DNA from: Epiperipatus broadwayi
Taxonomy: Eukaryota > Animalia > Onychophora
Assembly: GCA_028023455.1 (NCBI GenBank)
Contig: JAQFVV010000011.1
Coordinates: 1,116,001-1,180,000 of the forward strand
Reading direction: 5' to 3'
DNA length: 64,000 nucleotides
The translations under genes and the position numbers were made by a program. Positions 6,303 through 53,966 of this stretch are shown here, in pieces. The notes under the pieces are model-generated. The model did not search any database. It saw nothing but the letters and a program-made list of their open reading frames with translations, and was not told where the DNA came from. Position 1 is the stretch's first letter. Each line of letters opens with the position of its first letter.

Positions 6303-6653
6303 ATTAATATTACTTACGTAATCAATGTGCGTTAAATAAATTTATAATATATATATATATATTGTAAATCAGGATTGAATTCTCAAGAAAAGTGTAGAGG
6401 GAAAAGGATAATGCAGAAAAAAGACTATTCCTACCCTAATCTAAATTTTAACCATCATTGCAAACTAACTAGATATCATTTCTGCTCTTTAATTTAAACT
6501 CCACTAATTTAAAAGTGTTAATAGTTGATTTTTTTAATAGTTAATGTGTATATTCGAATGTGAAATAAAAATTTTATGGTATTCATTACTGCTATCAATT
6601 TTCCAATTTATCTCTGAATATAGAACATATCTGACATATGTATTTTGATATTA

Positions 6654-6712
6654 AAACAGGCAAAACTCTCTACATGTATTGCCATTCAACATAAGAAATG
6701 GTGATCATGTGA
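6654..6712. mobile_element. Family B minimal fold-back insertion (59 bp, no ribozyme core)
   Basis: Antisense arm aaacaggcaaaactctc... joined to the sense tail cataagaaatggtgatcatgtga. 13-bp TSD TATTTTGATATTA at 6641-6653 and 6713-6725. Confidence 0.75.
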
Positions 6713-9644
6713 TATTTTGATATTATTAAACAAATTTCAAAATTATTGCTTACACCTGGAAAATTTTTAAATATTAATACTTACTGACATAAATAGCAGC
6801 ATTAGTATTATAAGTAAAACAATAATTGAATGGTGTTTAACTGTAGCTCATATGAAGTTTGAGAACCGGAACTGATGTCTGCGATCCAAGGACCATGGGT
6901 TTTGGCATATATTATTTCACCATTGTGCTAATTGATCCATGCAGCAACTTAAATTGTTTCAATTCTAAATAAATTTAAAATGATTACTTCGATTATACCA
7001 TTAAACTTTATTTTTTTATTGTAAAATGAATGTGCTTAGTTTAAAAATACATATTTATTGAAATAGTTTAACCTTTGTATTAAGTTAAAAAAGATTATTA
7101 AATAGCTTATTAAAAATGAAAAAAAGATTAAATCCTATTAAATTAAAAAATGATAATGATCGTGACTAATAATAATATGGTCTCTTAATTAAAATAGCAA
7201 GTGGGCTCAAGCACCATAGTGATAAAATAACCACAACGATTCAAACTAAAATTTTCTTCACTTATTCAAAGTAAGATTTTCTTCACTTTCCTCAGTTGGA
7301 AATCAGTCCAGAAACTTGTAACTGTTGAATTCAAACTCTGTGCTAACTTTGTGGACAATTAAAACTAAAGGTTTAAAAACTTACACAGTGGTAGGTTACT
7401 GGACTCTAGAACTCAAGGTTTGTGGGCTTTGGTCTGGCACTTCTAGCTTCTTCTGAATTTCTGACTAATAAAAACATTTGATTATTTTACTTAATAGTTA
7501 ATTAAAATGAAATATTAGTAGCTTACCAAAACACAAAAGCTATTAATTAAAATTGGGAAGGGGGAGCGAGATGTAATAATTAACAAAAATGGTATTAAAT
7601 TGATTCCTATCATCATTACAGGCAATCAAAAGCAACTTAATAATCAACATTGAAAACAGTGATGAAAGTTTTATGTATCATAAATATAGAGACTAATTTA
7701 GAGTTGATCAAAGAAGGTATACAACCAATATAGACATTAGCCAAAAAATCAAAAAATTCATTTCAGAGAATATTAATGAGGGGGAAAACGCAATATCAGT
7801 GAAGAAATCAGACAAGAAGCTAATAAGAAAAGAAAGTAACTCCAGGAAAAAAAAGATTAATCTAGAGAATAAATGTTAATATAATAGAATAAATCATGTA
7901 GATTGAGTAAAATATTTCCAAAATTAACATAACCAATCGTTTAAAAACACATGATGTATCTTGAATAATAATTTTTTTTTATAAACAGATGTATCTTGAA
8001 TAAGGGCTTGGATTCAATGCATTATTTACACGTTTTTTTGTGATTTACACCTTAGTTGTAAAAAAATAGTCTCAAACAATATTTGTTACTATCTTATATT
8101 ACCTTGTTTTGTCATGTCTTGTCAATTGTGGTAATCAAACCTATCTTAACTTGGTTACATTCTGGGACCTAATACCATCATAAAGTTGGCATTATAACAG
8201 TAGCCAAGACCATTTTTTAATCGATTATAATCCAGTAATCAATTATTTTTCAAATAAATTATATCACGTTAAGCAAAGCCACTGCATAGTTTGGTAACTC
8301 ATATCTCTTCAAGCACGTATTAATAATAAATTAATATTAATTGATCTACAGGTGTCAACTTCTTGCATCCATATCTTTGATATCATTCAGTTTAGAAAAT
8401 ATATTCATGATTACTATAAATCATTTATTAATGTAAAGATTAAAAGATTAATATATGTTTTTTTATTAAGCATGACAACATGGTATTATTAATCCAATTT
8501 TATACTAACATCGATTAGGGCTTGTTTTCACTTAACTATATCAATCACAAGCTTCTTACAACACTTGCTATTATTTTATAATAATGAAATTAAATGTAAC
8601 ATCTTGTTATTCGCATACACAATAAAAATATCATTATTTAGATAATACTATGATTAAAGCTGTTCATACACCTGGGAATTTAGCACAAAACTATTATTGT
8701 TTAATAAAATCAGTAATTTGCATTCTTTTTTAAAAAAAAAAAGAAATATTTTTTTAAAAAAAATGTATATATCAGATACAATAATTATTGTATACAGTTT
8801 ATTGCCGTAAATATTTATTTAAAAAAAAAGTTTTCCAAAATTATATATTACAATTCTCTAATAAAATTATTTTCTTTCCCTCTCTTTATTATTATTATTT
8901 TTTACTAGTAAAAGCATCATTCTTTAATTTGAACTTTAAAATTTTAAATTATATCATGTAGAACAGTGGACAATATAATTATTATTACGGAAATGAATCC
9001 CAACTTAACAAAAAGCCAAGGAGTATAAATATGCTGGTCCAATCGCCCGAGAGTAGTAGTAAAGGAAGTTGGGTAACGCTAATAAGGAAAAACATTTTTT
9101 TAAATATATAAAAGTTGTTTATGTTTTCAATTGTAGTATTTTATTAATAAGTATAATACATAAAGAAATAGGAAGTATGTGGTGCATTTTGATCTCGCGA
9201 TATAAATTTCTCCCAAATTGACTTTGCATGGAAAAATATATACCAGACATATATTATTATCGACAGCACCTCGTAAAAGAAAAGTTAATGGGAAAGAGAA
9301 AAATTGTTAAAAATAAGTATCTGTTGTCATTTCAGTCTTATATTATGTAAGAACTTTAGATTTTGATTTACAAGTGTCAAACTTATTCTACTCACAACTT
9401 TGTCAGGATTCACTCTAGATAAATACAATTATGATTATCAGTAATTATTTATTAAACTACAGATTAACTCTATAAACTTTAAACCTCAGTTAAAAATTAA
9501 TATATCTGATTTTTAAACTTAAACACTCACACTATGGAGTAATTCAACTTCATTTTTCTTTTCCCACATGTGATATCTTTTATAGAAGTACCGAATAATC
9601 TCCATACCACCACATATTTTTGAAAACATATGAATAAAGATAAA

Positions 9645-10802: not shown

Positions 10803-11327
10803 ATATATATATATATATATTAGAAATTTATAGCATAAAATATATATTTGGAATTTCAAACTCTTCTTATTATTATATATAAATTCATTTCTGTTTGCAT
10901 AGTACTTTAGACATTAACACTGTGCGATTTAGCATGTTTTTTGATTAAGTGATTAGAAGAGGTTATATATATATAATATTAAAAGTTTCCAGCATCAAAT
11001 ATTTATGTAATATATTCAGTGTTACAATCTTTCCTAATCACTATATATAAATTCATTTTTGTTTGATTAATGGTTTAGATGTCAATATTACAAATTTAGT
11101 ATGTTGTATTATATTATAAGGTGATTGGGAGAGATCACAGCTGTAATTATATTACAAACATATATATATAGCTTTAGAAATCATTATTACATCTACTGGA
11201 CTTCTAATACATAGTCATAGATAACAGAAAAAAATATATTAATAGCTTGTATAATGTGTTTTTACATAATCAGGTTTTTTTCAGTTGGCATAAACCACTT
11301 TTCATATTTTATTTAAATAAATTATAT

Positions 11328-11804
11328 GCGAGATTTGAACTCAGACTTTCACATGACCCACTACCCTCAGGCCATCTCATATTGCTGACCCACCTGATCA
11401 CACACATTTTGAAAAGATAAATAATCACCAATAAACGTATTTCAACCTTGGCACTAACAAGGGCTTTGAACGTTCCACCATCAGATTCTCAATGAAATGG
11501 AAGGATGAAGCATTATGAGTTGGAATAGTTTGAAGCCTGTCCATTAAAGTATGAAGATTGGCTATCTTAATATAAGGCTGAGCACTGATAATATATATGT
11601 GTGAGGATAGTAATCTAGACCAACTGATGACTGCTGGTTTAGCATGAAATACTATATTGGTGATTATTTATCTTTTCAAAATGTGTGTGATCAGGTGGGT
11701 CAGCAATATGAGATGGCACTGAGGGTAGTGGGTCATGTGAAAGTCTGAGTTCGAATCCCGCATATATTACATATATAAATGCAGGTTTAAGCCTGTACAA
11801 GATA
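11328..11804. mobile_element. Family A fold-back insertion with hammerhead in the sense arm
   Basis: 11328-11445 is the reverse complement of ~11646-11764. Hammerhead core CTGATGA 11624-11630, GAAA 11646-11649. B-box-like GTTCGAATCC 11749-11758. 15-bp TSD TTAAATAAATTATAT at 11313-11327 and 11805-11819. Confidence 0.85.
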
Positions 11805-12569
11805 TTAAATAAATTATATAAACTTAATTAACAAATGTAATTGCAATCAGCATTTAATGATAACAATTATAATTGTGTCTAAAATCTGATTAAAAGTACA
11901 GCATTTGTAAAATGTATTTATATATGTATGTATCAAACAATTCATCACGCAGAAGATCATATGATACTTGAGTACTGAAAGTGATAAAATTGAGCTTTAA
12001 TCTAGGTTTTTGAGTCTTGTCCCTCCGTCACTATACTAAACCATATAGAGCAAAAAACAAACAAACCACAAAACAGTGTGTGTGTATATATATATATAGT
12101 CACGCATGTCGAACACAATTAAAACTGTTGGCTTTCCTTAACAACAAACATTCAAATATTCCTGGAGTCAAATATCAGGCTCCAATTACTTTACAAATAT
12201 TGTGTCATGGAATATTTAAATTAAGACTGCTTAATTATGATTAAGAGTGGATAAATAATTTAAGCATTCTTATAAACATGCTTACATATGTGTGTGTGAG
12301 GAGGGTAATTACTGGATTGATAAACTTACAAGTACTAATTATATCAATGCGCACTACTCTTTCATCAGATTTGTATTTGTTTTAGGAATGTAAAATAAAT
12401 TAATTTATATTTGCTTTCCCAATTCTTATAAAGATATTCAACCAGACAAATAGCACCAGTCAATATGATTAATAATTTGACTTTACAATACAAATTAATT
12501 TCTGTATTATCAATTAAAAAACAGAGGATTGCTTCTACATAGTATATGTTAATTATTTTATATGTCATA

Positions 12570-15350: not shown

Positions 15351-15507
15351 TGATTACTAAGTCATTACTATAAATAAATCTATCTAATATTAATGTCTTT
15401 CCCTCACATCTTTTTATATAAATTATTTTTAAGATGCAAATTATTTTAGATAAAATATCTTTTTATTATTATTATTTATACAATCAATACTAATAACATT
15501 TGACTTT

Positions 15508-15574
15508 AAACCACTAAGCATCATTCTGGCTTGCACTGAGTGGCACTATTGTATGGACAGTTTTTGCCTGTTTT
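15508..15574. mobile_element. Family B short fold-back fragment (mirror orientation)
   Basis: aaaccactaagcatca (reverse complement of the B tail) fused to the sense segment ttctggcttgcactgagtggcac...gcctgttttaa. Confidence 0.6.
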
Positions 15575-16204
15575 AATATTTGATGTATAGTGCATTAGTC
15601 CGAGCTTTTAGATGAGAAAGGCAAAAATTGTTTTGAAGATGGATATAGAGTATTTTATTATCTGGTGTTCAGTGATTATGCAACCTTACAGTAGATGGAT
15701 CTAAACTATAGTGAAAATAGCTGCACTTGGAATCATATGGATAAGCTGAGAAAGGCATGTAATAGTGTTATTAATATTAATCTATTTAGACAAAAAATTT
15801 AAAAAAATTACAATTGGCATTTATAAACTTACAAAGCAAGTGTATTAAATTGAATTCAAAAATTTTAGGATTTTTTTAAATTTTCAGTCTATTTAGTTCC
15901 CTGTTTTGAAATTTAAATTCTCACTGACCAAAGCAAAAGGGAAAAACTGGTTGGGAGATATGAATATTATAGCATGTGCCAAATAATGTCCTTTGATTTT
16001 TAAGCCTCTAATAGATGGCTCTAAAATAAGGTGAAACCATTCTTGAAAGCGTATAATTAAGCATATGATCAAGTTATGTTATATTATTGTTGGTACTAAA
16101 TTTTTTACACTAAAAGATAGAAAATGTCTATAGTTGGCACAAAATGGTGGTCTCTAAATATATAAAAACTGATCTGGTGTTATATATATATATATTATTT
16201 ATAC

Positions 16205-20010: not shown

Positions 20011-20387
20011 ATTTATACATATATGAGAATCATATATAATAATACATTTTACTTCAAGAAACATGAAAACACAAATTTTTATTTATTTATTTTAGGATAG
20101 GGTATTAACACATCAAAAATCAACACCAACAGTTCTTAACCAATCAAGAGCCATCTCCTCTAAGTTATGTAAAGCAAAGAAGCCAACAGGGGCAAAACTC
20201 TCCATACAGTAGTGTCATGTTTTTTTGTTTAAGGCCAACAGAGGCCTGGTAAATTGGACACTCCTTGTAAGTAATAGGTTATTTATTACATATTTACATG
20301 GTTACTTTCCAAAATCAAACAATTTTTTTATTTGAAAATGAAATTTATTTCAGAAAATCCAAGTTTTTTTTTTTTTTTAGAATTTGA

Positions 20388-32810: not shown

Positions 32811-32951
32811 TGTATCTGTTATATTTGATATATGAATTTGGCAACATTACCAACAACTGCTTTGTAAAAAAAATATGATTTACTAATGGAGAAATTACTT
32901 CCTTGTATAAAATAGGCATTGTAATAAAAATTACTGATTGTTAAATATAAA

Positions 32952-33176
32952 AACCCATTTCAGTGCAAATAAGAGTAATCAATAGTTGCAAAAAGGTTTG
33001 TGCATAAAATCCCCATCTAGTGCCTAGTCATTCAATATCCCCAGACTAATTTCTAGCTTGTGGCCATCATCAGTGAGGAGCCTTGGATCTGAGAGCACTG
33101 CTGTATGGAGAGTTTTGCCTCTGTTGTTGCTTGATAAAGCATAAGAAATGATGATCATGTGATGTTTAGTGGTTTA
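32952..33176. mobile_element. Family B fold-back insertion with hammerhead on the minus strand
   Basis: Minus strand: CUCCUCA CUGAUGA UGGC CACAA GCUA GAAA UUAG UC^UGGGGA (core 33067-33073, cleavage at 33044). TSD ATTRTTAAATATAAA at 32937-32951 and 33177-33191. Confidence 0.85.
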
Positions 33177-34837
33177 ATTATTAAATATAAAGGATGGAAT
33201 TGCTTCCTTTGCATAAAATGCTGGTAATATAAATTATGATTTAGTTAGGTATAGTAATTTTTTTTTAAAAAAAAAAACAAATTAATTTTTTTTTTGTTTG
33301 TTTTTTCAATTATAAATTTGACAGCATTTCAGACAAATGTAAGTTTTTTTAATTGATTGTGAATTTGATATGCGGCAGCCTTAAGGACAAACATGTATAC
33401 ATTCATATTGATTATATATAGATTAATATTCAATTTTTTTTTCCATATGGGGTGGACAGTTTATGTAAGAATTTACAGATATAGTCTGGAGTTTACTTGA
33501 TTTATAGTATCAAATGTAATCAACAAATATTACTCTTCAATTTACTTGAAAGACGATTATGAATCTCTATTTTACAATAGCTTTTCATCCATACTGAATA
33601 AGGCAACATTCTGGAAGCTATGCAGATAATTTCTGAATTAGGTAAGCATATTTTTGATAAGGGCAGGCAATCCATGCTAGAACTGGAGAAAAAAACTCAT
33701 TACTTCTGGATGCTACACTGATGATGACAAAAAGGAAGATATACTTTAGGATGCCTTAGCCAGATATATAGATCAAGTTAAAATCACATGCTTGGCTAGT
33801 CATTGTTGCAATGTCGATATATTAGACTGAATTGATTAATATATTCACATAGTCAATAGACAATACAGAAATTGCACTTTTTGTCTAACAATTTAGAATA
33901 TTTTGAGGTTTATTTTTAATAATAAATTGCTATAATTTTTTCTACTTTGTTCCATTATTTTGATGCAAATTATATTTGTTTTTCTTTCCGCTTTCTTGTA
34001 TAGTTTTATTACATCCTGTCTAAAATGCTTTCCTAAAACATGTTTTCTTTAATTTATGTTATTCAGGCTACATGCGCAGAATGTTCATATTAAAAACTTT
34101 TATCCTATGGTTAGTTTTAATCATCTTTTGTTTATTTCAACAGCAATTTTAATTGCTTCTAGTTTATTTATTCCGAAAACAATTAAAGTCGACCTATCAA
34201 ATTATTACACAAACTTCAGAGTGTGATATTTATGTTCACATAATTTATGGGTTAATTAATAGTTACCAAATTAAATTTGATCTTTCAAAATATTACACGC
34301 GCGATAAACGCCCTTACATATATATTTGCATAATTTAGGATAAACTTGTTTAAATAGAAAATCTTTAAAAATTGTTATCATAAATTAGTATTAATTTAAA
34401 CAGTCTAAATCTTTAAATCTAGATATTTAACATTACAACGTATAATTAAAATTAAAACTACAAATTAAAGCTATTTGTATTTCCAAGCCCCCTTCCCTCG
34501 AATTTAATCAGAAAGTCAATTTTTCAATTTGCAAAGTACATTAATTGATTTTCCTAATTCATTATTTTCATTTATTTTACTGAAATAAATGGCTATTTCA
34601 ACTCTACCAGAATATATGTCTAAATATATATACTTTACATTATTTAATTAAACAATGATTTTTTTGGGTTTTTAATCATTTTATTTATTACTTTTTTTTC
34701 CTCATATGAAATAATATTGATATGATTATTCAAAGTTAGATTAATTTTCTAATTTATTATTATTTCTCAACATAAATTAACCTGCACATATCTATCTACC
34801 TCGTGATTGGATTCACGGTCATTACAATACATATGTA

Positions 34838-35508
34838 TAATCTATAATATTAATAAGCCAATAAGCTGATATACACATGCGCTTTGCAGATGTCACTATA
34901 TAAATGAATACTCCCACTTTTTCAAACCCAAGATAAAGTCTTTAAGAAAATATAGAATGAATCCACCTATATTTTCGACCCAACCGTATATGTATGGGCG
35001 AATCTGAAGTGTTTGAAATGAAGAGCGTGAAGTTATTAATTGATCACTTTAAATTACTTTTCTACATCGTAAATGAATGACGCCAATGAAATTTCTAGAA
35101 TTTATGATACGTCATTCTTATAATTAAACATATGTAAACAAGACATTTATTTTCTTATATAGCGCTTTGTTCTATAATCTATAATATTAATAAGCCAATA
35201 AGAATGACGTATCATAAATTCTAGAAATTTCATTGGCGTCATTCATTTACGATGTAGAAAAGTAATTTAAAGTGATCAATTAATAACTTCACGCTCTTCA
35301 TTTCAAACACTTCAGATTCGCCTATACATATACAGTTGGGTCAAAAATATAGGTGGATTCATTCTATATTTTCTTAAAGACTTTATCTTGGGTTTGAAAA
35401 AGTGGGAGTATTCATTTATATAGTGACATCTGCAAAGCGCATGTGTATATCAGCTTATTGGCTTATTAATATTATAGATTATAGAACAAAAACATCGCGC
35501 TATATAAG
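34838..35508. repeat. Near-perfect ~284-bp inverted repeat (fold-back) with flanking 12-bp direct repeat
   Basis: ~34836-35119 and ~35200-35483 are reverse complements with only a few mismatches. AATACATATGTA occurs at 34826-34837 and 35509-35520. Confidence 0.9.
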
Positions 35509-36260
35509 AATACATATGTATGTATGAGTGTATTATATTTTTGCCTATACTAAACTAAACTGGTGCATAAAATTCTTCTAAAACTTACAAAAATATAAAT
35601 TGAATTTATATAATTTTTATAATGCAGAACCTATATACATATTTATACTTGTAATAATAATAATGATATCTTATTCATATATATATACAATTACCTTTGA
35701 AAAGTCTTTTTGATACATAAACTTTACAAAATCTTCTCAAAAATAAATTCTGGTAACTCATATTATAAGTATCAAATGTGGTGTCTTGATTGGTTGTTAA
35801 CGTTGGAGATTTTCATAATCTATAATTCAAAAACTTTTATTAACTGAATCAAATTACAATATATTGCTTTGATCTATTGTTTTAATTATTACTGTATAAA
35901 GCTTTGTTCTCTTATAAATATAAGTATAATCTGTATCTTAAACTTTTATATTGGTATTTTAAAAAATAATCTTACATAACACATACTATGGATCACAAAA
36001 TTAATGTTTATCGAAATTTCAGCAGAGTTTGAGTTTAAAATAAGAGTGAAGGAAAATTTATTGAAATCTTTAAAAATTTACCCTCTCCCCCAAGGGTTTA
36101 CCTGCGGTGTATTACGTTTTTTATGTTTTATTTAAATTAGTGTTTTTTAATCTATCTGTCTAGATAAAATTTTGTAACTCAATTTTAATTACTTCTCAGT
36201 ATCATTGATTGCATTATTTTGAATGACAATACATTTTTTTAAGTGTCTACAAACAGTTTT

Positions 36261-36546
<286 letters not shown>

Positions 36547-37799
36547 GTTATACTGTAATGGTACAGAATCAGATGTGAATTTGAGATAAATATGGGGAAA
36601 TGGAAAACCTACTATCATCCATTTTTAACAAATATAAAATGTATGAAAAATGAATATAGAATAAATAAATATAGAATAAGTAGAGTCAGCAAAAACAAAC
36701 CATAAGTAGTTATAGCAACTATACTTAAAATAATAAACTCTCCAGTATTAAAGAGGAATAATAAATCATTCATCATCAGGACCAATAAACAAGAAAATCA
36801 ATCAATAATCAACTGTCAATCTTGTTATTGGATTTAAAAAGACCCACTATAGTTAGGCTAATTATCTAACCATTGCCAATCTATGGGAAAAATATAACAT
36901 AATTATTTGAATGCACATACTTAAGTGCTAATCTATTATAATAAAAAAACATACTGGGATACAGAAACATGCTGATCATCATCAATGCTCTAGCCACATA
37001 GTACCATCAATGTACTGGCCAACTATAAATTTAATTTCTAATAAAAAATATATAATATGTAGTGCATGGACATTAAAGATAATACTTTTGTGCCTTCTGG
37101 GATTATCATCTGGATGTCCAAATACCAACATAAACCCTCGCATACATATCAACCAATCATTATGCTTTCTTATATCTCAGGAAGCAAGAACTTTAGTAAT
37201 TGAGATTGTAAACAAGAGAAAATAATCAACATATAATATTTTAAAACTATTTTAATATGAAATAAAGTCTCTGGGATAATTTAAAACAATGATATATACA
37301 TTTATTAATTAGAAACAATAAAATCAAACAAAAGATCTGTTAAGTACACTATAAATATTCTGATTTTGATTAAAAATAATAAAAAATATGCTATAACATT
37401 GTAATTTACAGATATTTTAATGTTAACATGAAACACATCTATATAAGCACACAGAAGTGCCTGTATAATAATATAAAATTAATATTTTTGAATTGTCAAT
37501 AAATTAATAAAAAATTAATTCATTTTAATGAGATATACATGACTGACTTTAACATATATGGTTATTCATGCAATTGTGTGCACACACTGGAGTTTATATC
37601 CTAATGATATTTCATTCATCAATAATAAATTATTAAATCCATATTATTATGTTTACACAAGACATAATTAAATCAACATTGAAAATATATATAAAACAAA
37701 TGCACATGTGTGTGTATTCTAATGTAAAATAAAATAGATAGTATGAATTTTAAATATTCTTAAAAATCAAAATTAGTAATACATTATTTCTTAAAATTT

Positions 37800-38075
37800 A
37801 ATTAGAAAGGATTTGAACTCATATGTTCAAGCTTCCAACAGTTACCCACTCCATCTTATACAACTGATGCACATGACCACATACATGTGAAAAAGATCTG
37901 AACCAGCACTCATCAGTTGGTCCAGCACAAAATATGTATATTGGAAATCATTTATTTTTTCATATGTATGTGGTCATGTGTATTGGTTGTATAAGATGGA
38001 ATGGATGGATGTGGAAAGCTCGGAAATCTGGGTTTAAATCTTTTCTAATTACATGAATTTCAGTATAGACAATAT
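37800..38075. mobile_element. Family A fold-back copy with micro-inverted ribozyme core
   Basis: Arms 37805-37895 and 37945-38045 are inverted. The central 37898-37924 is the reverse complement of tggaccaaCTGATGAgtgctggttcag. Confidence 0.75.
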
Positions 38076-41000
38076 ACTTGTATTTAAAATTTTTTTTATT
38101 GTAAGTAAAAGTTTTTAATAAAAAGCATTATCTTTAACAATGCAGTCTGAAAGTTCTTTTAAAATTCTGGCTTTTGTTGCTTCATTTTCAATATTTAAGA
38201 AAGAGTTCCAAGTTTAATTTTTTAATTACAAGGTAAATCTTTTATAAATGCTAACTGGAATAAATCCTATGGAGACAAACTGGCCATTTATTGTTATTCT
38301 TTTTAGTTGGATAATTTAGTGAAAAGTTATTTATTTTAAAACTTATAAATTAAATATTTAACTGCAAAGTTAGGTGCTTGAAATAATGTCATTTTTAATA
38401 TATAATATATTCTACTCACTAGCTAATATTTGTCCATGAAGTAGATCTGCTTGCACAGCATATACATATATGGCTGCAGTAACTTCATTTGCGCTGCCTG
38501 AATATAATCATGTCTTACTGACTTACTGAAAATATATACTGACTTACTGATATTTTCAGAAAAGGTATATATCAGGCAAATTTTGGCAGTCAGTCAGCCC
38601 CATTCAGTCCCTATAGTTTGATAAACTTCAGGCAGGCAAACAATCTAGTATACAAATATGGGTTATGAACCACGAAAAATCCAACCCTTACTTCCATGTG
38701 AATACAAACTTGACCATCATGACAGTAGTAGCGGATGTTTTGCATTCTATATTTGCTTTTTCTTTATAACGTAATAATGTTCTCTTTTTTTCTATCAAAC
38801 CTGCTTTTTATAGTTTCTGGTGGAATTTGAAAACACAATAACTAAGGTTTTTTTCTTGATTTAAAAAAACAACTTGTTAATAGCTTTTCAATTCTCACTA
38901 ATCAAAATCAATTTCTCTATAAAATTTTGTTAAATACTATAAACAAAATCAGATTGTAGAATTTACAAAGTATATTATAATAGTTTTTATTTATCAAAAA
39001 TAGTTTTAATTAGAAAATATTTTTATTAGGCTTAATGCAATTAAAAATAGATAAAAAAAATTTATAATTACCGGTCTCATCTATTATAACATGAATACAA
39101 GCTTGTTTTAGATTTTTTTTAATTATCAAAATCAGAATTAAATAAACTATTAAATAGACTTTTTTAATGCTTGATTTATAATATAATAATTTATAATAGT
39201 TTTAAATTCTAAAATTATTATTTAATAATCTGTTATTCCCGTGTATATATTTTAAATAAATATCTACAAGAAATTTTGTTTGTGTTAATTTCTAGTTTTC
39301 CTTTCAACTTTATATATATATATACACACACACACTACTATGCTGTTGCATGACATGAACACTATCTTCTCCATATACATGTCTAGTAGTCCTTGCAATT
39401 CAAAACTTAATAATTCTCTGAAAATTTATGCAAATTTATTCAACATTTTAAAAGCATAATTTAAATAAATTAAAATGGTAATTTTCATTGATGAAATTGG
39501 CCTTTTAAATATTTTAAATTATGATTAATAAAGAAATTATTAAAATATAGTATGTTATGTGAAGCTATTCTCATATGAATAGAAAAAAGAATCATCAAAC
39601 TGGGTCTAGTGCAATAATCATACATAGAATTACAAAATAAAAATTTACATAAATACCTTTATATTCACATGCATGCATAAAAATGTAAAAAAAAAAAATT
39701 TAGTTGCTTTCATGATATTTTTGATATGTAACCAAAAATAAGAATGTGGAAGATAAAAAGTACATTTTTTTCAGTTCCCCTGTTTTGTTATTACGAGATA
39801 AAAATAAAAGTATGGGGCATTGAAAACCCATGTTTTTGTTTTTGGCTGTATTATATCAAGAATATGAAAGTTGAAGAAAATTTACTTTTTATTTTTTTCA
39901 TGCATTTATATGAATAGGATTTCTTTAATTTTTCATTTATTTTTTGAATTGGTTTTTGTAAATTCCACCTGATTAGATATTCTGTTTGTAATAACCTCAT
40001 CAGAAAAATTGTAAAACAATAAAATAAATATTAGAAAACAATCTTTTTTTTTAAATTACTGAAATTCTTATGGAATACATAATTTTTTCAAAAACAATTG
40101 TTTTAATAAAAATATTTTGTGATTGAGCATGTAAACATGCATGAAATGCAGCAATGGCTGATTTTTTAAAATTTGCTTTAGTTCTAATTATTTTACATAT
40201 GACTACCATTCAATTTGTCCTGCATAAACAAGATGCTACAAAAGTTAGTAACTCATTTGAAATAACATCTTTGGGTTATAAAAAGGCAGTCATTTATGCA
40301 ATACCATTTTCTATATTTAATGGCAAAAGGATTTTCAGCATTAAAACTTAGTTTACACTTTTTTTACCATGTGACATATCATCATCATCCATTGCAAGAA
40401 AGTTTCTTCAAGTTTAATCCAATTTTTTTAAAATCCATAACCTCTTTTCTCCACATCACACAAGCAAACTTCCCTATTTTATCTATCCAACCCATATGTT
40501 TTTAAATCTTTAAACATTTCTTGGAATCCAATTTAAAATTTTAGCTGTTTATCTATTATCATCTCTTCTAGCAATATGACCAGCCTAGCTATATTTTAGT
40601 TCCTTAATTATTTTAACAGTGTTAGTGATATTTATTTGTCTTCTCACTAATGTATTTCATTTTTGATCTCTTCTTGTTACTGCTAACATACAATATTCTA
40701 CTTTTTGTTGAGTATTTATGTGTCCAAATTTCATATCCAAAGTAAGAACTAGTAAAACACATTTATTAAAAATCTTCCTTTTCTAACACATGGGTACCTT
40801 TCCTTTCAATACTAAGGTATTTCTACTAAAAGCACCCCAATCAAGTTTAATTTTATGATTAATTTCATCCATTATGTTTCCATCTGTATCAATAATCTGA
40901 CAAAGGGTATTTGTAGTCTTGTTAATTTCTTCTAACTTATTATTATGAATCTTTATTTGCAATCTTGTGAGAAAATCCATTGAACACTACTTTAGTTTCT

Positions 41001-41795
41001 TTAGCACTTACTTTCAGTTCTATGTTCTTATTTTTATTTGATAACTCTTGTGGCTTTTCATCAAGATCTGAAGCTTTATTTGTAAAAGCATTTACATTAT
41101 CAGTAAAATCTAGATTAGTTAAATAATCTCCATTTGTTTTTACTCATTTAGCTTCTCATTTTAGTCCACAAAATACTCTTTGCAAAACTGCTGTAAAAAG
41201 TTTTGTAGATAGGAAGTCACCCTGTTGTATAACTTTCTCAATGTTAGTTTTCATAGTATTAGCATGTAATGCAATTACTGCTGTTGCATTTTTACAAATA
41301 TTGCTCACAATATGATAATATCTTGGATCTATATTTTGATGATCCAATGCTTCAGTCACTGTAAAAATGCTTATAGAATCAAATTTCATAATTTACAAAT
41401 CCAATGTATAATGACAACTCACATTCATTGGTCCTTTCTATAACTACTTTTAATATTTGGATATGATCCACCATGCTAAAACTTTTAAATGTAGTTTGTC
41501 CTTTTCATTGACTAAAATCTAAAGTTGATTATAAATGAATTGCAATTAATTTGGTGAAGACTTTGTCCTGAACGGATAAAAGACTGATAAGTCAGTAATT
41601 TCTAATATATTCTTTATCCTTTTTTTCTATATCAATATTAATACTGCATTCATCCAATCACCTGGTACATCTTTATGATTTAGACATTTGGTACATAGTT
41701 TTGCCAATAAATTTTGTAATTTTTTCACCTGCTTTTTTTTCAGATATTAATAATGAATTCATTTCCTGGAACTTTTTCCTTTGTCATAGATTTAA

Positions 41796-42004
41796 CAAAA
41801 CAGGAAAAACTCTCCATATGTATTGCCACTCTGTGCAAGCCAGAGTAATCAATGGATGCCAGAAGGTTTATGCATAAAATCCCTATCATATTCCCAGACT
41901 AGTTTCTGGCTTGTGGCACTGAGTAGCAATAAATATGGAGAATTTCGCCTGTTTTGTTAACAGTTATAAGCAAGCATAGGAAATGGTGATCATGTGATGT
42001 TTAT
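41796..42004. mobile_element. Family B fold-back insertion (ribozyme truncated at the junction)
   Basis: Antisense arm starts aaaacagg, sense arm ends gtgatcatgtgatgttt. Imperfect 14-bp TSD TGTCATAGATTTAA / TATCGTAGATTTAA at 41782-41795 and 42005-42018. Confidence 0.75.
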
Positions 42005-42444
42005 TATCGTAGATTTAATTATACGTTTAACTTCTTCAGCTAAAATGCTGGGTGATTCTGAAAATATAACAATTGTAATGAATAATTTGTTTGTTCTTTA
42101 TTATTACATAATTTTTCATAGAAATTTGTCACACATTTTATAATACCATTCCTCTTTTTAATAGGTTTTTATTCTCATTGCTGAAACACCTTCATTTCAA
42201 TAGCAAGATGTTGTTTTACACTTTTGAGAATGTTTATTATCTTTTAAAGCCTTTCTTGAAAATTCCCAATCATATTTTGAGGTCATTATTAACTCTTTTT
42301 TATACCATTTTACAAATCTCTGGATATTCAATTCTTCTTAATAGTTCAACTGTAAAAAAATTTATATTTCATTTCTATCACAGTAAAAAAATTATTGGTA
42401 AATTGCTATTTTTTTTGTATCAGCTATCTTTCTTGTCATTCTTA

Positions 42445-42728
42445 CACAGAGGCCAAACTCTCCATACAGTAGCACCACTCAGTGCAAGCAGATTAATCAA
42501 GGGTTGCAGGGGGGATGTGTGCATAAAATCCTTATCTAGTGCCTACTCATACAATATCCTCAGACTAGTTTTTAGCTTGTGGCTTTCATCAGTGATGAAC
42601 CTTGGACCTGAGAGCACTGCACCTAAATCTCTGGTTTGCACTGAATGGTGCTATTGCATGTAGAGTTTTGCCTCTGTGTAAACAGCTTGTGTAAGCATAA
42701 ATAATGATGATTGTGATGTTTAGTGATT
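42445..42728. mobile_element. Family B fold-back insertion with G12-mutated hammerhead (minus)
   Basis: Minus strand CUGAUGA AAGC CACAA GCUA AAAA CUAG UC UGAGGA (core 42586-42592). TSD TTTCTTGTCATTCTTA / TTTCTTGCGATTCTTA at 42429-42444 and 42729-42744. Confidence 0.8.
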
Positions 42729-44966
42729 TTTCTTGCGATTCTTAATAGAATAATACTTACCTCATTGATTTTAATTATGTCTTTAAAACAATTTGAAAGT
42801 TCTTATTTAAATTCCTCATGTTTCTGAAGGTTAGGAATATTAACTGTTAATAATTTCTTTCTTAATAGTTTTGTCTATCTAGTTTTGTTCTAGCATGTAT
42901 CTCATGTCTTATTAATTGGAGAATCATTTTCTGGATTAACTTATTAAAGACATTAAAACCTTTAAGTATATACTTTGTGTTAGTCAAAATATATTCCATT
43001 TCTAGTGGACCTTCAAGAATGCTTCTATGTCTATTTTTATTTAACTTTTTTTTTTAAAGAAAGAATTCATCATACATAGTTTTTATTTATTTTTGTTACC
43101 CACAGTACTTTCAACTTCCAATCATTTGCTAATTCAAGCATTTAAATTTTTCCATAATAATTTTAAAATGTTGTTTGGTCTGATCAAAAGCATTTTGTAG
43201 AACCACTAAAAAATCCTCTATTTCATCATCACAATAAGACTTTGTTGGCACATAAACCTGAATTATCTGCATTTGGTATCTTTTATTAATTAAAATAACT
43301 AATGTGACCACTCTGTCTGATATACTATCATAAATATTGTTCTTTCATTTACTTTTATAATGAATCCTAAGCTTGTGTTTTCATAGCAAAATACATTTAT
43401 TAAATCATCTCTTTAACTTTTCTTTTATCTTCACATAGCCTAACAATGTTCCATTTAAAATTAGACAATTGTTGGTACCTAACTAAAAGATTGTCATCAA
43501 ATGGCAGTCTGGAAACTGCAATTAGCAGTTTTTTAATGTTTTTTGGCACCGATAAGCAGCCAGTAACTTTGCATTTTCCTGGGATATTAACCATAATTTG
43601 TTTTTGTCTGTCATAATTGTAACTATCTATTTTGATCACACAAACATTTATTCTGTTTTCAAAAAAACTCAATTGAAACTCAAAATAAGAACTACTAGGT
43701 AATTTAGAAAAAAGATTATTATGTTTCTTAATCTTAAATTCAGAGATAAAAAGCTAATAAATTCCTTATGCTGGCTATTGAATATTAGCTATTCATGTTT
43801 ATTTACTATTTGAATAAACCAAAATAATAACAATTGCAAAGGACAATAATGTATAAAATGGATATTAAGAATTTGCACCGCTCACTTCCTTAAGATTCCT
43901 TTCTGCAAGCTGATATATAAAACTCCCAAATATATCAGGGATTCTTGCATCACCCTGGAAGATGAGCATTGATTCAAAAAAGTCATTGATGTATCATGCT
44001 ATAAAAATCCTATATTGCTTTCCATCTCCAGAACTTTCAGGTAACAAAAAATAATAATGCAAAATATTAAAATTTTAACTTTTTTTAAAATACCTTAGGA
44101 ACTTTTTGCAATACCTTGTACTTAACACTTTCATGGGCTTAGACGATTCATCAAAGATAAATAACTGTGACAGTAAAAATTGTGAGAGTTATATAATATT
44201 AGCCAATTTTAACAATAATTCATAACAGTTTATCTACATTTGACAAATTCAGATTGTCATGGTAATGAGATAATGATAATGGTTAAGGTAATGGTATTAT
44301 AATGATGATGATAATATTAATTACCAGCTAGCATGGAATTATAGGTAATCAAATCATCTTCCCAAACTTATTTATATTTTAGCCATGAGTAAATACAACT
44401 ATTTAATCTATACCTCTGCTTATTAAGTTACCAGGATATTGCTCTTACATCCCCTATTCCAAACCAATAATTATTTTCAGTAAGTGTCCTGCACAATTCA
44501 GTGATGGTGGTAGAGTGGCAGGTTTGACAACTAAAGGTCTCTATGGATAGCAGCTCAGTATTGGCATTTTCAGTATTAGAAAATCATGTGACTTTCTGTA
44601 AGATAAACAATTCGATTTCTAATATTGCTTGCAGTAAAACTAATTCATATATAAAGCACTCACCAGCTGATAGAATAAAGTACATTTCAGTTATTGAAAT
44701 TGATAGTAATTTACTTAAAGATCCATACGCAAGCAGATTTAAAAGCTTTTAAATTTGCTTACGTAATAAATCATATACATAAATCACAAAACTTATCACA
44801 AAAAGGAAAGAATTAAGTGACAAACTACAATTTTTCAAAGCATAATAAATTAAATGACAGATTAGTAAAAACTTCTTTTAAAATTGCTTTATTAATTGTT
44901 AAAAAAAATAAAACCTTAGATAAATAATGAAGATTTCATTTTATCAACAGCAATAAATATTTGAGA

Positions 44967-47354: not shown

Positions 47355-47625
47355 TTGGCTTTATAGCTCAGTTGTCTAGAACCTTATCTTAGATTCAATA
47401 TTCTTAGATTCAATATTCAGAATCTAAAGGTGCAAGTTTGATTCGCATACTAGTACTATTACTGATCAGGCTAGCAACATCTGAAAAAGAGAGATGAATA
47501 TCTCGAAAACATTATGTTATATACTAACCTGTGTACTATTATTAACAGTTGAAGGTATTTGGAAAGGTTAAATGAAGTTAGAATTTCTCTAAAGACGTTC
47601 GATGTTTAATATTAAATAATGGAAA
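47355..47625 (+). mobile_element. tRNA-headed SINE with hammerhead-like tail (family C)
   Basis: A-box TAGCTCAGTTG, B-box-like GTTTGATTC, then AACAT CTGAAAA A GAGA GA TGAATA TCTC GAAA ACATTA TGTT. The downstream tail matches 51060-51160. Confidence 0.55.
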
Positions 47626-48240
47626 TAGTTCAATATATAATTAATATGACTAACACTCGTATATAAATTTTCAAAATAAGAGACTATGAAGAGACAAAAT
47701 AAATTATATAAACCCTATTTTGTGTAATTATTAAGGTATTAAGAAATGAAATATATTTATATTATAAAAATAGTCATATATTACATTATAAACAAGCAGC
47801 TATATTAAAAATAGATGTATAAGATTTATAATTGACAAACTTTATTTTCACAGTGAATATATTATCAAAGCAATCAGTGAATTTTTATATATTACTGTAT
47901 TTTAGAACCATCAATGTAAGCATAAATAATTAATTGATCCCATATATGGCAAAGTTATGGGTAATGGCCTTCATCAATTAAAAAAACATTGGATTGCATA
48001 TTACTATCAAGTAGCCAAATTCACTTTATTTTGTAGCATCATGAAAGTTTTTATATTCTATGATATTGTATCCAAACTAATTTATTCATCTAACAATATA
48101 GATATAACATGAGATCAGTGTTAAAAAAGGATAAAAGAAAATTGTTAAATGAATATGTGAAATCCAGTGATTGGCATCCATCTGGTATTACTTTTGATAT
48201 CCATTGACTACTTATGTTTCTAGATATTAAAAATATTCTA

Positions 48241-48600: not shown

Positions 48601-48859
48601 AAGTCTCTGTATCACTCTTCTGTTAAGGGTACAAGTCTCAGATCCATAAGGTAATATTTGCATTACTCAAAATGAAGAGTGAATTATTATTACTGATAGT
48701 ACAATGCTAAATTTAAGGTACGAAAGTCATGCGATGGTGTAATTTTAGTGCACACCATTCTTTTGGATAAAAGATTTACAAATGCAATAATAGTATCACA
48801 TGATTTTTCCAGATGCTCACATATGTTTCCAAGAGTATATGAATAAACATATGAGAAAG

Positions 48860-49656
48860 TTAAAATAGGCAAAACTCTCCATACAGTAGTGCCACTCAGT
48901 GCAAGCCAGAATAATCAATGGATGCAAAAAGCTTTGTGCATAAAATACCTATCTAATGCTTATTCATTCAATATTCCCATACTAGTTTCAAGCTTGTGGC
49001 TTTCATCAGTGAAAAGCATTGGATCTGATAACACTGCACTTAGATCTTAGAATCTAATGCAACCCTCCAGCAGCCACCTTTTATCTCTACTTAACTACAA
49101 AACTATTAGTCTAAAATTGAAAACAATATTTTTAATCCAAGCTCATTAGCTTATATAGTCATATAAGTCTGAACTCAGTTCAATGCCCATACATTTTGGT
49201 GCCTTTTGTTCTTTAATAACCACAGCCACCATTATCTTATTAGGCAGGATTAGTGTTAAACCACTAAGCATTACATGATCACCATTTCTTATGCTCGCTC
49301 AAGTTGTTAAAACAGGCAAAATTCTCCATACACCCAGTGCAACAGAATAATCAATGAAATGCAAGAGGTTTGTGCATAAAATTACTATCTAGTGCTTACT
49401 TATCCAGTATCTCCAGACTTGTTTCTAGCTTGTGGCTTTCATCAGCGCAGAGCATCAGTGAGGAGCACAGATGAAAACCACATGCTAGGAACTAGTCTGA
49501 GGATATTGGATGAGTAGGCACTAGATAAGGATTTTATGCATGAGATTTTATGCACAATCTTCTTGCATCTATTAATTATTCTGGCTTGCACTGAGTGTAT
49601 GGAGAGTTTTGCCTGTTGTAACAGCTTGAGTGAGCATAAGAAATGGTGATCATGTG
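48860..49656. mobile_element. Family B composite: minus-strand tandem with two hammerheads (436-nt spacing) plus inverted sense arm
   Basis: Cores at 49003-49009 and 49439-49445, predicted cleavage at 48980 (GUA) and 49416 (GUC). Inverted arm 49460-49656. 13-bp TSD ACATATGAGAAAG at 48847-48859 and 49657-49669. Confidence 0.85.
48965..49026 (-). ncRNA. Type I hammerhead ribozyme, best-paired family B copy
   Basis: UUUUCA CUGAUGA AAGC CACAA GCUU GAAA CUAG UA^UGGGAA. Intact core, fully paired 4-bp helix II, palindromic CUAG helix III. Confidence 0.8.
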
Positions 49657-50934
49657 ACATATGAGAAAGGAATGTGATATTATCATTTGTAAAGTCATAT
49701 GACATTATTGTTTGTAATAATCTTCCTAAAGATAAAAGGAATTTACAGTTAGCATGAAATTAAAGTTTCTGCAATATCTATAATCTGACATGGTCTCAGG
49801 TTTATAAAACAATGAAAATAAGTTACATTGAATTCAAAACTGTGAATAATGTATAAAAATTTTCTCCTATATGCATAAGTATATTAGTTCCAGCTTTGAA
49901 TCCTAGTATTCATTGTTCCAAACAAAAACCAGAAAACAATCTGGGGGTAGGAATAGAGTAAAGAGAATGCTGATACTATCATGCAAACACAATTGTTACA
50001 ATATATAAGTATTCTACCTAATATCAGACCTCCATATGTAATATGCAAGTTGGCTTGAATACAAAAAGTTGAAAGTGATGAACTTTTAAACTATTATTAA
50101 AAAAAATTAAAAAATGGCAGTTGAATGAGTGTATGCAATATTATGAGACTCACTGATAAAGAAAAAGAGCCAAAATCTAGTCTGGGTTTCTCGCTAGTAG
50201 TACTATCAGGTGCTTCGGCTATTTATATTTATATAAAAGGCGTTAGAATAATGATATAGAGTTAAATTAAAAATAGGAAAATCATTTGAAATTTTTATTT
50301 TTGGTATTAAAAGAATTGTGAATAATAATTGAAAAATAGAATCTATTGAAATATTCCAGTCCTGGTAGGTTTACTACATTATGAATCTTCAATCTCCATT
50401 TCTCAAGGACTAGAAAAAATAAACACTATATATATATAAAGATGGAACCCATTAAAAATTATGGATTAAAACAATTTAATGCTAATTCAATAAAATAGAA
50501 ATAAAATACAATTCAGGTTTCATAATTCAAAGCATTCACATCTATTGTTTGTATAAAATACAGGCATATATGTATAATTTTAATATCATAGTAATTACTT
50601 TATGTATTAAATCTTTAATTAAAATTTTGCTCCTATTCAAAGAATGTAGTTTATTCTACTTATAGATGATTCAATCTAAAAGCATTATTTGGAAAAAAAA
50701 AGAATGACTGTGGGGGAAAACATTTTAAATAAGATCTTTAAAAGAAACTTGAAAAAGATTATTTTACATATTTTTAATTTATTTATAATTAAAATTTATA
50801 AAAACGTAATTATTGGAATATTATTCAATTTTGAGCTAAGTAATTATATATGTGTGTAAGCGTATATAATCACTATTATTTAATAAAGAATGAATTAAAA
50901 ATAATGTGTCTGTAGTAATTATATTTTGGATTCC

Positions 50935-51149
50935 TGCCATCATCTAGTCTAATTGGTTAAAGTGTCACCTTAAATTCAACAATCACAAATCTAAAAGTCC
51001 AGGTTCGATTTCCATGCTAAAGGCCAACAACACCTGAAGAAGAAAGACGAACACACTCGAAACGTTGTTATATATTAATCCATGTTCTATTATTAACAGT
51101 TGAATGTATTTGTAATTTTAAATAAAGGCTCAATTTTTCTAAAGACATT
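50935..51149 (+). mobile_element. tRNA-headed SINE with hammerhead-like tail (family C)
   Basis: A-box TAGTCTAATTGG, B-box GGTTCGATTTCC (~51002), then CAACAC CTGAAGA AG...CTC GAAAC GTTGTT. Cleavage triplet apparently deleted. Confidence 0.6.
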
Positions 51150-51163
51150 AACATTTAATATTA

Positions 51164-51828
51164 AGCCAATAAACATCCTATGACCACCACCTCTTATGCT
51201 TGTGTATTAGATCCTAAGATCTAGGCGCAGTGCTCTCAGATCCAAGGCACCTCACTGATGAAGGCCACAAGCCAGAAACTAGTCTGGGGATATTGGATGA
51301 GTAGGCACTAGATGGGGATTTTATGCACAAGCCTTCTGGCATCCATTGATTACTCTAGCTTGCTGTGTGTGGCAATACGTATAGTGAGTTTTGCCTGTTT
51401 TAACAACAGTTATACACAAACATAAGAGGTGGTGGTCATTTTATGTTTATTGGCTTAAAACCAATACTGCCTAATAGGATAGTGATGGCTATGGACACCA
51501 AAATATATGGGTACTGAACTGGGTTCAGATCCATATGACTATATAAGCTAATGGGCTTGGATTGAAAATATTAAGGTGTTTTCAGTTTAAGACTCTTAAA
51601 TGGAGATAAAAGTGTTGCTGGAGGGTTGCATTAGATCCTAAGATCTAGGTGCAGTGCTCTCAGATCCAAGGCTCCTCACTGACGAAGGCCACAAGCCAGA
51701 AACTAGTCTGAGGATAATGGATGAGTAAGCACTAGATGGGGATTTTATGCACAAGCCTTCTGGCATCCATTGATTACTCTAGCTTGCTGTGTGTGGCAAT
51801 ACGTATAGTGAGTTTTGCCTGTTTTAAC
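51164..51828 (+). mobile_element. Family B head-to-tail dimer (424-nt unit) with two intact-core hammerheads
   Basis: Cores CTGATGA 51255-51261 and CTGACGA 51679-51685. GUC cleavage at 51284 and 51708. Short inverted tail 51164-51206. 14-bp TSD AACATTTAATATTA at 51150-51163 and 51829-51842. Confidence 0.9.
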
Positions 51829-53309
51829 AACATTTAATATTATTAGATGATGGAAATATCCAGCATATAATTGCTACTAAAACACCATCATCAAAAATCT
51901 TCAGACATACAATGTGTGTGTGTGTGTGTGTGTGTATACTGTAATAATATTTATATGTCCTTTCAAACTGAAAAAAAAACTATCCATGCTGAAAAATATT
52001 ATACCAGAATTGTGATTTATCAATTACAGATTGGAAAAAAGACAATTCAAAAAATGAAGGATTGTCTATAATATATATTTCAATGGTAATGAATTTGGGA
52101 TCAATGAAAGTAGATAGATGGTGATCACAAAAATGGCGCATGAGTAAACAATCGATCAGTTTTAACTTTCGTTATATAAATAAGAGAACAACAAAAATTG
52201 AATGACTGAAATTTTTATTTCAAAGCCTTGTATGAGTTTTTAATGTAAAATTTGAAATTCATCAGGGTAATGAGTCCTCAGTCATGGTCGTAAGAAAAAA
52301 GCACAGATAAATCAAACTTTTCAGAAAGTAACGTCATATTGATTTTTAAATTCTTTTCTTCTTTTGAAAAAAAAACCATAAGATGAGTAATACATGCATC
52401 TCTCAGAAATAAACTGCTAATAGGCTGGTTGTGTTTTAATTTTAAAATAGAAAAGCATCAACTACTGAAGAATAACTATAAATATAGATTGTCAAACCTT
52501 AAAAAATACTTATTCGCATTTTAAGGTGAAGTCGAAAAATTGATTCACAGCTTTTAAAAACTTAATAACTCTAAGAATTTAAATTACTTGAGTAATGAGT
52601 TGAGTCATTCATTGTGAAAACTGTAAATTTAATTATCTGGAACATTTTTTCTAAAAAGTTTTTTTTATTTAAAAACAACAACATTATACTATACTAAAGT
52701 TAGAATGAAAAGCGTTAAATGACAAATAAGTTAATTTTCAAAGTAATTTCTGTACTTAATTAAACAAAATGATTCATAAGTAATTAAAACTAAGTACCAA
52801 TTTTTTAAAATGCGACTTATTTCTAAAAATCTTTAAAAAGTAAAGTTTATAAAAATAGATAAATTAATATAACAAAACATTAACTTTATTAATTGTATAA
52901 TTAATTACATGACCCTATAGCAAATTGGATATTAGAGTTCCACTCATTAGACTAGACAAGAAAAATTTTGCTAGTTTAACATGAGAATCAACTAAACTAT
53001 CCAGGTTTATTGACTTTTAAAAAATTAGATGATTATAAACAAAGTTTAAATTTTTTTTTTGTATAGGGATCATATATATATATAACCATTAGAAATCAGT
53101 CAACACTTAGACAATCCTAATATAGATAACAATCAAGAATTTCAAACTGTTGTCAAGGCAACCTCCTTTTAGCCATAAAGGTGGACTATATATATATTAA
53201 TTTGGTAAAGTATGTTCAAATTGAAGATCAAAGACGTTTATAAATTAGCGCGCATATAAAAAATCAGAGGTATACATATGTGAATATAGTACAGACTATT
53301 TAAGGTTGT

Positions 53310-53680: not shown

Positions 53681-53966
53681 TTTGTTGCATTATTTATTAA
53701 TTACTATGAATGATGGTATTTAAGTACTTTATATCAGTTCATTTGTCATCAAAAATATAAAATGTAGGTCAAATTCTGAATATGAATTACATATAAGGTG
53801 CACAGGATTTATTTCAAAGGACTAAGCTTGAATTTAAATTATTGCTGCTCAGTTTGAGACAACTAATAAAGGGAATTCTCATAAAAATAACTTTGTGAAT
53901 CTTATATTGATATAATTCACAATTCAAAATTAGTTTGTTATGATAGATTGGCTATCTTAATATAAA

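Follow-up and report, generated by a model that had tools for sequence, protein, structure and literature searches.

Fold-back insertions of a putative hammerhead retroelement in Epiperipatus broadwayi and their likeness to the footprint of Penelope-like elements

How does a repeat come to be inserted as two copies of itself that face each other head to head, stop at two different but fixed points of the same unit, and lie between a single pair of direct repeats? The question is raised by a repeat, here called family B, in a 64,000-nt stretch of the genome of the onychophoran Epiperipatus broadwayi (NCBI GenBank assembly GCA_028023455.1, contig JAQFVV010000011.1, positions 1,116,001 to 1,180,000 of the forward strand; hereafter the window, in which all positions below are counted). 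The window is AT-rich (23-35% G+C) and almost devoid of long open reading frames (ORFs). We consider it likely that family B is a non-coding, tandem-capable hammerhead retroelement of 424 nt, of the type of the animal retrozymes without long terminal repeats (non-LTR retrozymes), which was inserted in trans by the reverse transcriptase (RT)/GIY-YIG enzyme of a Penelope-like element (PLE).

As a reference unit for family B we chose a natural copy of 424 nt (51208-51631), whose tandem neighbour is 96.6-97% identical to it. BLAST and pattern searches detected ten family B loci in the window (6654, 15508, 20185, 32952, 41796, 42445, 48860, 51164, 53967 and 56502) and no further copies. Each of the ten consists of a head-to-head pair of arms, i.e., an inverted, 5'-truncated copy and a direct copy, and the same searches found no single-armed copy in the 64 kb. 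Nine loci had been listed in an earlier, sequence-only reading of the window, and all nine indeed belong to family B and are two-armed. The tenth (20185, at ~20180-20241), absent from that list, is degenerate and minimal and is probably a family B insertion as well.

The outer ends of the arms are confined to two sites. The first, T1, is GCCTGTTTT at unit positions 191-201 (allowing for overlap with the flanking duplication), with arm sequence ending ...GAGTTTTGCCTGTTTT, and forms an outer end at nine of the ten loci; at the exception, 32952, the corresponding end lies near unit ~165. Outer ends at the second site, T2, form sub-clusters between unit 234 and 252, namely at 235-238 in three loci (ending ...CATGTGA(TG)), at 244 in one, and at 247-252 in six (ending ...ATTGGCTTAA). 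Both sites together cover 30 of the 424 unit positions and receive 19 of the 20 outer ends. Nine insertions carry one T1 and one T2 end, while T1/T1 or T2/T2 combinations do not occur; by our own arithmetic nine mixed pairs out of nine correspond to P<=0.002, as independent choice of sites gives at most half mixed pairs. The offset between the two ends had been put at ~45-60 nt in the sequence-only reading; the offset itself is real, and its measured span is 36-57 nt. In the same reading, T1 had been assigned to the antisense arm and T2 to the sense arm in most insertions. The fixed, unlike ends are borne out, but the strand labels carry no information, because any head-to-head insertion reads antisense on the left and sense on the right on either strand. 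Locus 51164 demonstrates that the labels follow the choice of strand: on the forward strand, T2 terminates the short arm at the left and T1 the long arm at the right.

Truncation of the arms, whose lengths range from 18 to 621 nt, is on the inner side, and the position of the inner ends divides the loci into three groups. At four loci the T2 arm is tail-only, i.e., it starts at unit 205-234, 3' of T1, and the two arms share no mutually complementary sequence. The first is the minimal insertion at 6641-6725, in which a T1 arm of 31 nt (6654-6684, antisense, unit 194 to 163, outer end ...GCCTGTTT(T)) is followed by the filler TT and a T2 arm of 26 nt (6687-6712, sense, unit ~211 to 236, ending ...CATGTGA) between two copies of TATTTTGATATTA at 6641-6653 and 6713-6725. 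The arms, the TT and the matching 13-bp pair can be read directly, and 6654-6712 (59 bp) is indeed an insertion made up of the two termini only, as had been proposed. A second minimal insertion (15494-15583) has the opposite orientation, with the T2 arm at 15504-15525 (unit ~252 to 234), the T1 arm at 15526-15573 (unit ~147 to 193/196) and a flanking duplication of ~10 bp with one mismatch. In the degenerate tenth insertion (20180-20241) the T1 arm occupies ~20185-20214 and the decayed T2 arm ~20215-20232, and the duplication, ~AAG(G)CCAACAG, is ambiguous by 5 nt. The fourth member of this group is the insertion that holds the reference unit (51150-51842, perfect 14-bp duplication). It is nested in another repeat and consists of a T2 arm at 51164-51207, antisense on the forward strand, and a T1 arm of 1.47 tandem units at 51208-51828, sense on the same strand.

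In three further insertions the T2 arm extends beyond T1 by 22-45 nt, and ~100-150 nt separate the inner ends. These are 32937-33191 (15-bp duplication with one mismatch; antisense arm 32952-33101, from unit ~165 instead of T1 to 20; T2 arm 33102-33176, unit 172 to 250/251), 41784-42018 (12 bp, one mismatch; T1 arm 41796-41917, unit 194-199 to 57; T2 arm 41918-42006, unit ~158 to 244) and 42429-42744 (16 bp, two mismatches; T1 arm 42445-42630, unit ~197 to 8; T2 arm 42631-42728, unit ~152 to 248-250). The remaining three have near-palindromic junctions with inner ends 2-11 nt apart: 48847-49669 (perfect 13-bp duplication; T1 arm 48860-~49455, 1.35 units, unit 197 to 48; T2 arm ~49456-49656, unit 46 to 236), 53953-54708, which is nested in an element of another family, A (11-14 bp; T1 arm 53967-54561, more than one unit; T2 arm 54562-54694, unit 127 to 247-250), and 56490-56677 (perfect 12-bp duplication AATATTGAAAAG; T1 arm 56502-56557, unit 200 to 142; T2 arm 56558-56665, unit 131 to 238). 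The junction had been described as variable, and the inner ends do vary; the variation is not random, given the three near-palindromic junctions and the four tail-only T2 arms. Within the T1 arm of locus 53967 a piece of ~45 nt (CAAAACTCAC(TA)nTTGCCACACGCAGCAAGCTA) occurs as a direct duplicate beside an expanded (TA)n run (53986-54032), which could result from local slippage or from a template jump during reverse transcription.

The T1 arm extends further 5' than the T2 arm at nine of the ten loci, the exception being 56502. We do not propose a longer T1 arm as a general rule, as a fold-back of family A (11323-11804) displays the opposite. The T1 arms of 48860, 51164 and 53967 exceed one unit (1.35-1.47 units) and form partial head-to-tail tandems. 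Such arms read through an internal T1 and T2, which implies that both sites lie internally in a multimeric template.

Both arms of a locus come from a single event. Private T1 variants are common to the two arms in 42445 (GCCTCTGTG), 56502 (GCCTGTATTA) and 41796 (CCTGTTTTGTTAA), the closest match of an arm is in most cases its partner in the same insertion, and three-way comparisons display about equal divergence (86-88% identity at 48860, 92-96% at 53967). Together, these patterns exclude two independent nested insertions as well as recent assembly artefacts. A heterogeneous template was considered for the tandem units of 48860 and rejected, since all three pairwise identities fall within the same narrow range and fit one homogeneous template; they provide no argument for or against rolling-circle copying of one RNA circle.

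The direct repeats that flank the insertions are target-site duplications (TSDs). At nine loci the best flanking repeats measure 13, 10 (one mismatch), 15 (one mismatch), 12-15 (one to two mismatches), 16-19 (two to three mismatches), 13, 14, 11-14 and 11-12 bp, where the insertion boundary is ambiguous by ~3 nt and the genome is ~73% A+T. Against 3000 random position pairs scored alike, they exceed chance at P<=0.005 in eight of the nine loci tested, while 15508 reaches P=0.05. Eight recognisable TSDs of 12-16 bp had been reported before; the range measured here is 10-16 bp.

It is also evident that the B copies were inserted into previously continuous DNA. With B and one of the two TSD copies taken out, the host sequence of 51164 is collinear with 47468-47680, and contigs of the DNA run X1 hold further empty paralogues as joints from 51149 to 51841 with 7-9 letters between. 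Locus 53967 lies in a family A element, of which an uninterrupted target with a single target copy is present at 11545-11600. The host of 51164 (51050-51149 and 51843-51990) is itself a repeat, ~76% identical to 47468-47680, with many more copies in the DNA contigs.

A mechanism that would produce this anatomy starts from an enzyme that nicks both target strands with a stagger of 10-16 bp. From each of the two target 3' ends, reverse transcription of B RNA would then start at a fixed internal position, one being T1, just 5' of an A/C-rich stretch, and the other T2, 36-57 nt further 3', with T1 used on one strand and T2 on the other in each event. From the unlike ends we infer one start site per target strand. 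The two complementary DNAs (cDNAs) would stop at variable points and subsequently be joined head to head, and the expected product is a TSD, an antisense arm ending at T1, a junction, a sense arm ending at T2, and the second TSD.

This order corresponds closely to insertions of PLEs, for which an inverted 5'-truncated copy, a tail of 30-40 bp at one end and TSDs of variable length have been described (PMC3846280, PMC8557442). PLE insertions are further reported to carry the tail on a single inverted repeat and to have palindromes at the junction, and PLEs can mobilise foreign cargo in trans (PMC3846280). The endonuclease-positive PLEs (Penelope/Poseidon, Neptune, Naiad; Arkhipova et al. 2013, PMC3846280; Craig et al. 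2021, PMC8557442) share with family B the inverted truncated copy, partial tandems, the one-ended tail, variable TSDs, palindromes at some junctions and a hammerhead in the repeated part, so that the likeness to PLE insertions noticed in the sequence-only reading agrees with the published footprint point by point. Mobilisation of non-PLE cargo in trans through the repeat sequences is known from PLEs and would be a further shared feature, and in the non-autonomous Chlamys the 3' region is reported to be common to an autonomous PLE of the same genome. Family B differs from PLEs in that it has no ORF, its tail is 36-57 nt instead of the usual 30-40 bp, and its TSDs are 10-16 bp in contrast to 8-10 bp in the PLEs of Adineta vaga. 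Likewise, all copies seen are two-armed, and they shrink to ~50-70 bp, barely more than the two termini.

Biochemical support for the proposed mechanism comes from the purified Poseidon protein of Anolis carolinensis (PAc), which acts on both target strands by cutting and extending each of them (Frangieh et al. 2024, PMC11167929). PAc starts reverse transcription at two adjacent internal sites of the RNA without homology to the target, and the interval between these sites equals the genomic tail (PMC11167929); its preferred target-site motif is ATT. The start region is A/C-rich and located ~85-92 nt downstream of the hammerhead cut (PMC11167929). Similarly, T1 of family B follows the predicted cut (after unit 77) at a distance of ~117 nt and borders an A/C-rich stretch at unit 195-219 (76% A+C by our own count). 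The earlier suggestion that priming took place twice, at two fixed positions within the RNA and once on each target strand, with the PLE enzyme supplied in trans, is therefore the best supported of the explanations considered. Family B is unlike PAc in the division of T2 into two to three sub-sites, and no conserved stem-loop is present at its sites.

The part of the unit upstream of T1 and T2 is ~10 times deeper in word depth than the remainder in DNA run X1, which is expected from copies truncated 5' of fixed start sites. Summed word depth over family B reaches up to 1.7x10^7 in this run compared with ~30 at single-copy flanks, which is a depth and not a copy number; the DNA runs all derive from one sample, and the read data are assembled contigs. 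Words of family B are also present in assembled contigs of RNA-type runs with at least eight organism labels.

Several observations weigh against this interpretation. The sample comprises ten loci from one 64-kb window. A PLE ORF or remnant was not found in the window among the segments scanned against Pfam (10 out of 53 stop-free segments with a length of 75 amino acids or more), and the longest ORF of the window (161 amino acids, or 183 from stop to stop) has no match to the Pfam RT or GIY-YIG domains; the link between PLEs and family B is accordingly inferred. The 424-nt unit contains no ORF, and accordingly none with the RT and GIY-YIG domains that characterise autonomous PLEs. PAc uses its two start sites in vitro without strand preference (PMC11167929), unlike the genomic insertions of family B with one end of each kind. 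Three of the ten junctions are near-palindromic, which independent truncation of two cDNAs does not predict, the antisense arm of 32952 starts at unit ~165 and not at T1, and T2 comprises two to three sub-clusters instead of a single point. The region between T1 and T2 was examined for a conserved RNA structure comparable to the A/C-rich stem-loop of PAc, but none emerged (consensus fold of -0.18 kcal/mol, no covariation). The words in RNA-type runs could originate from DNA carry-over or read-through.

The single Pfam match among the segments scanned is a fragment of an rve integrase core at 472-699 on the forward strand (E=1.8e-10), part of a decayed LTR-type retroelement in the first 2 kb of the window, which are richer in G+C. 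The longest spurious ORFs of the window originate from a long A/T-rich simple repeat at 36190-36625.

The assignment of family B to the retrozymes is based on a predicted type I hammerhead ribozyme in each unit. In the reference unit the motif lies at 51241-51300 on the forward strand, with CTGATGA at 51255-51261 and the predicted cut after 51284 (unit 77). Its elements follow in the order helix I 5' strand, CUGAUGA, 4-bp helix II, GAAA, C-UA-G as a minimal palindromic helix III, UC, and helix I 3' strand, with helix I in two parts of 5 and 6 bp. A helix III of 1 bp with a palindromic loop corresponds to the type I design of metazoans, in which the ribozyme functions as a dimer (PMC4209133). 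In the six copies compared, 87.8% of the cells pair, as opposed to 17-42% if the partners are slid by one to three columns, and helix II has changed on both sides at two pairs. Two of these copies carry a substitution in the core (CTGACGA, CTGACAA) and a third has AAAA for GAAA. Rfam returned no hammerhead match at gathering scores, and none at E<=10 over 48700-54900; core and helices were checked by hand. The sole Rfam matches are sub-threshold microRNA models (mir-609, mir-3126, MIR444) on the fold-back junctions at 49412-49501 and 54516-54602. By their construction the junctions of family B form hairpins, which an automated annotation could confuse with microRNA genes. The ATG within the CTGATGA box opens a frame of 17 codons (51255-51308, unit 48-101), which may be a relic of a PLE N-terminus and is too short to search.

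Tandem repeats of ~150-450 bp with a type I hammerhead in each are characteristic for retrozymes, and family B displays a 424-nt period with one hammerhead per unit at 51208-51828. With the animal non-LTR retrozymes (PMC7229834; preprint 10.64898/2026.07.22.740005) it shares a non-coding, AT-rich, tandem unit of a few hundred nucleotides, a type I hammerhead in which helix II has 4 bp and helix III is minimal, palindromic and expected to act as a dimer, a very high copy number, and PLEs as proposed helpers. The two retrozyme papers describe tandem arrays and circular RNAs; according to them, TSDs at retrozyme insertion sites, when present, are longer than 4 bp, and the helper role of PLEs is proposed from ribozyme type, co-occurrence and similarity to pseudo-LTRs (PMC7229834; 10.64898/2026.07.22.740005). 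A term search of Cervera & de la Pena 2020 (PMC7229834) and of the preprint of Li et al. 2026 found no description of inverted arms, nor, in the latter (10.64898/2026.07.22.740005), a mention of a tail.

Alternatively, the inverted arm might be a hairpin copy: after a single priming event the 3' end of the cDNA would fold back and copy itself, an idea raised earlier for the palindromic junctions of PLEs (PMC3846280). The near-perfect palindromes at 48860, 53967 and 56502, with gaps of 2-11 nt for which we estimate a chance of ~6% per locus in a 424-nt unit, are readily explained in this way, and palindromes are abundant at inverted PLE junctions in the literature (PMC3846280). However, the arms have no complementary overlap in four of the ten insertions, the inner ends differ by ~100-150 nt in three more, and a hairpin copy has no reason to stop at T1 or T2 beside the TSD. 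The tail-only T2 arms in particular cannot result from one cDNA folding back and copying itself, and therefore favour two priming events. We regard self-priming as an unlikely explanation of family B as a whole. It may operate in a subset of events in combination with fixed start sites, and the three near-palindromic junctions leave room for self-priming, or for two polymerases colliding on one RNA, as a contributor to the two-site mechanism.

Twin priming as known from L1 would be a further source of inverted and direct segments. In that process two target 3' ends prime on the RNA, the first at the poly(A) tail and the second at an arbitrary site, and the product carries inverted and direct arms between TSDs of similar length. 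A short interspersed element (SINE) mobilised by a long interspersed element (LINE), with one priming event at the 3' end of its RNA and one at an internal site, would resemble the B insertions in these respects, and metazoan retrozymes have been compared to SINEs. The ends of family B, however, lack poly(A) or a simple-repeat 3' tail, both its sites are fixed internal positions, and the outer end of its inverted arm is fixed at T1, whereas it is variable in L1. Moreover, two-armed copies make up all ten loci instead of a minority, and a one-sided tail is described as unique to PLEs, all of which renders LINE-type twin priming very improbable.

Most copies of family B hold inverted repeats between direct repeats, as would a miniature inverted-repeat transposable element (MITE) or another fold-back DNA transposon with the arms as terminal inverted repeats. 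This we can hardly reconcile with TSDs varying between 10 and 16 bp, ends offset by 36-57 nt, minimal copies that lack terminal inverted repeats altogether, arms of 18-621 nt truncated on the inner side, head-to-tail tandem units and the hammerhead motif, and the dismissal of terminal inverted repeats in the sequence-only reading was correct. Assemblies are known to fail at palindromes, and PLE structures are difficult to assemble, but an origin of the fold-backs from assembly errors, two independent nested insertions or later rearrangements is negligible in view of arms that are 3-14% diverged, share private variants and are bracketed by a single TSD pair, and of short-read-derived X1 contigs (from what may be the assembly's own sample) that run across the flank/arm junctions at 53967 and 56502 and show no differences there.

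We tentatively suggest that the two start sites may not be free alternatives and that T1 and T2 could be used in a coupled manner, one per target strand in each event, probably by a dimeric complex that holds one RNA. Coupled use would explain the unlike ends (nine of nine in family B and three of three in clear fold-backs of other families), the frequent tail-only T2 arms and the products of ~50-70 bp.

The same scar is found in three fold-backs of other families in the window. The fold-back at 34826-35521 (arms 34839-35508) belongs to an unrelated family and is young, with arms of 286 nt that are 99% complementary, a perfect 13-bp TSD (AATACATATGTAT) and a tail of 28 nt on the right side only. 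Its antisense arm crosses a unit boundary containing the tail, and it holds the palindromic GAAATTTC, while the canonical CTGATGA is absent. The family A fold-back at 11313-11814 (arms 11323-11804) has a 10-bp TSD, a one-sided tail of ~30-38 nt, a tRNA-like B box (GAGTTCGAATCCC) and a CTGATGA...GAAA hammerhead core. Related to family A but diverged from it, the fold-back at 37791-38092 (arms 37800-38083) has a 9-bp TSD and a tail of ~30 nt. In both of the latter the tail-bearing arm is the longer one, unlike in most B copies.

In our assessment the architecture of family B and the mechanism proposed for it are otherwise known, and the family appears as a clean example of the PLE footprint rather than as evidence for a new mechanism. 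The footprint on a retrozyme-type repeat and the pairing of unlike ends in each event, which is unseen in vitro, are a modest addition. PLEs are the least understood class of retrotransposons, and the case for them as helpers of animal retrozymes draws on co-occurrence, ribozyme type and repeat similarity. A different kind of evidence comes from family B, i.e., a non-coding ribozyme repeat with a PLE-specific insertion scar, down to copies that consist of the termini only. Fold-back fragments of this kind, 50-800 bp in length, are easily mis-annotated as MITEs or microRNA hairpins. Unlike ends as a rule, together with tail-only arms, provide simple, countable predictions for the use of the two start sites in vivo. 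Should the coupled use of T1 and T2 prove true, retrozyme-type repeats would provide a natural, high-copy read-out of a PLE twin priming that is unseen in vitro.

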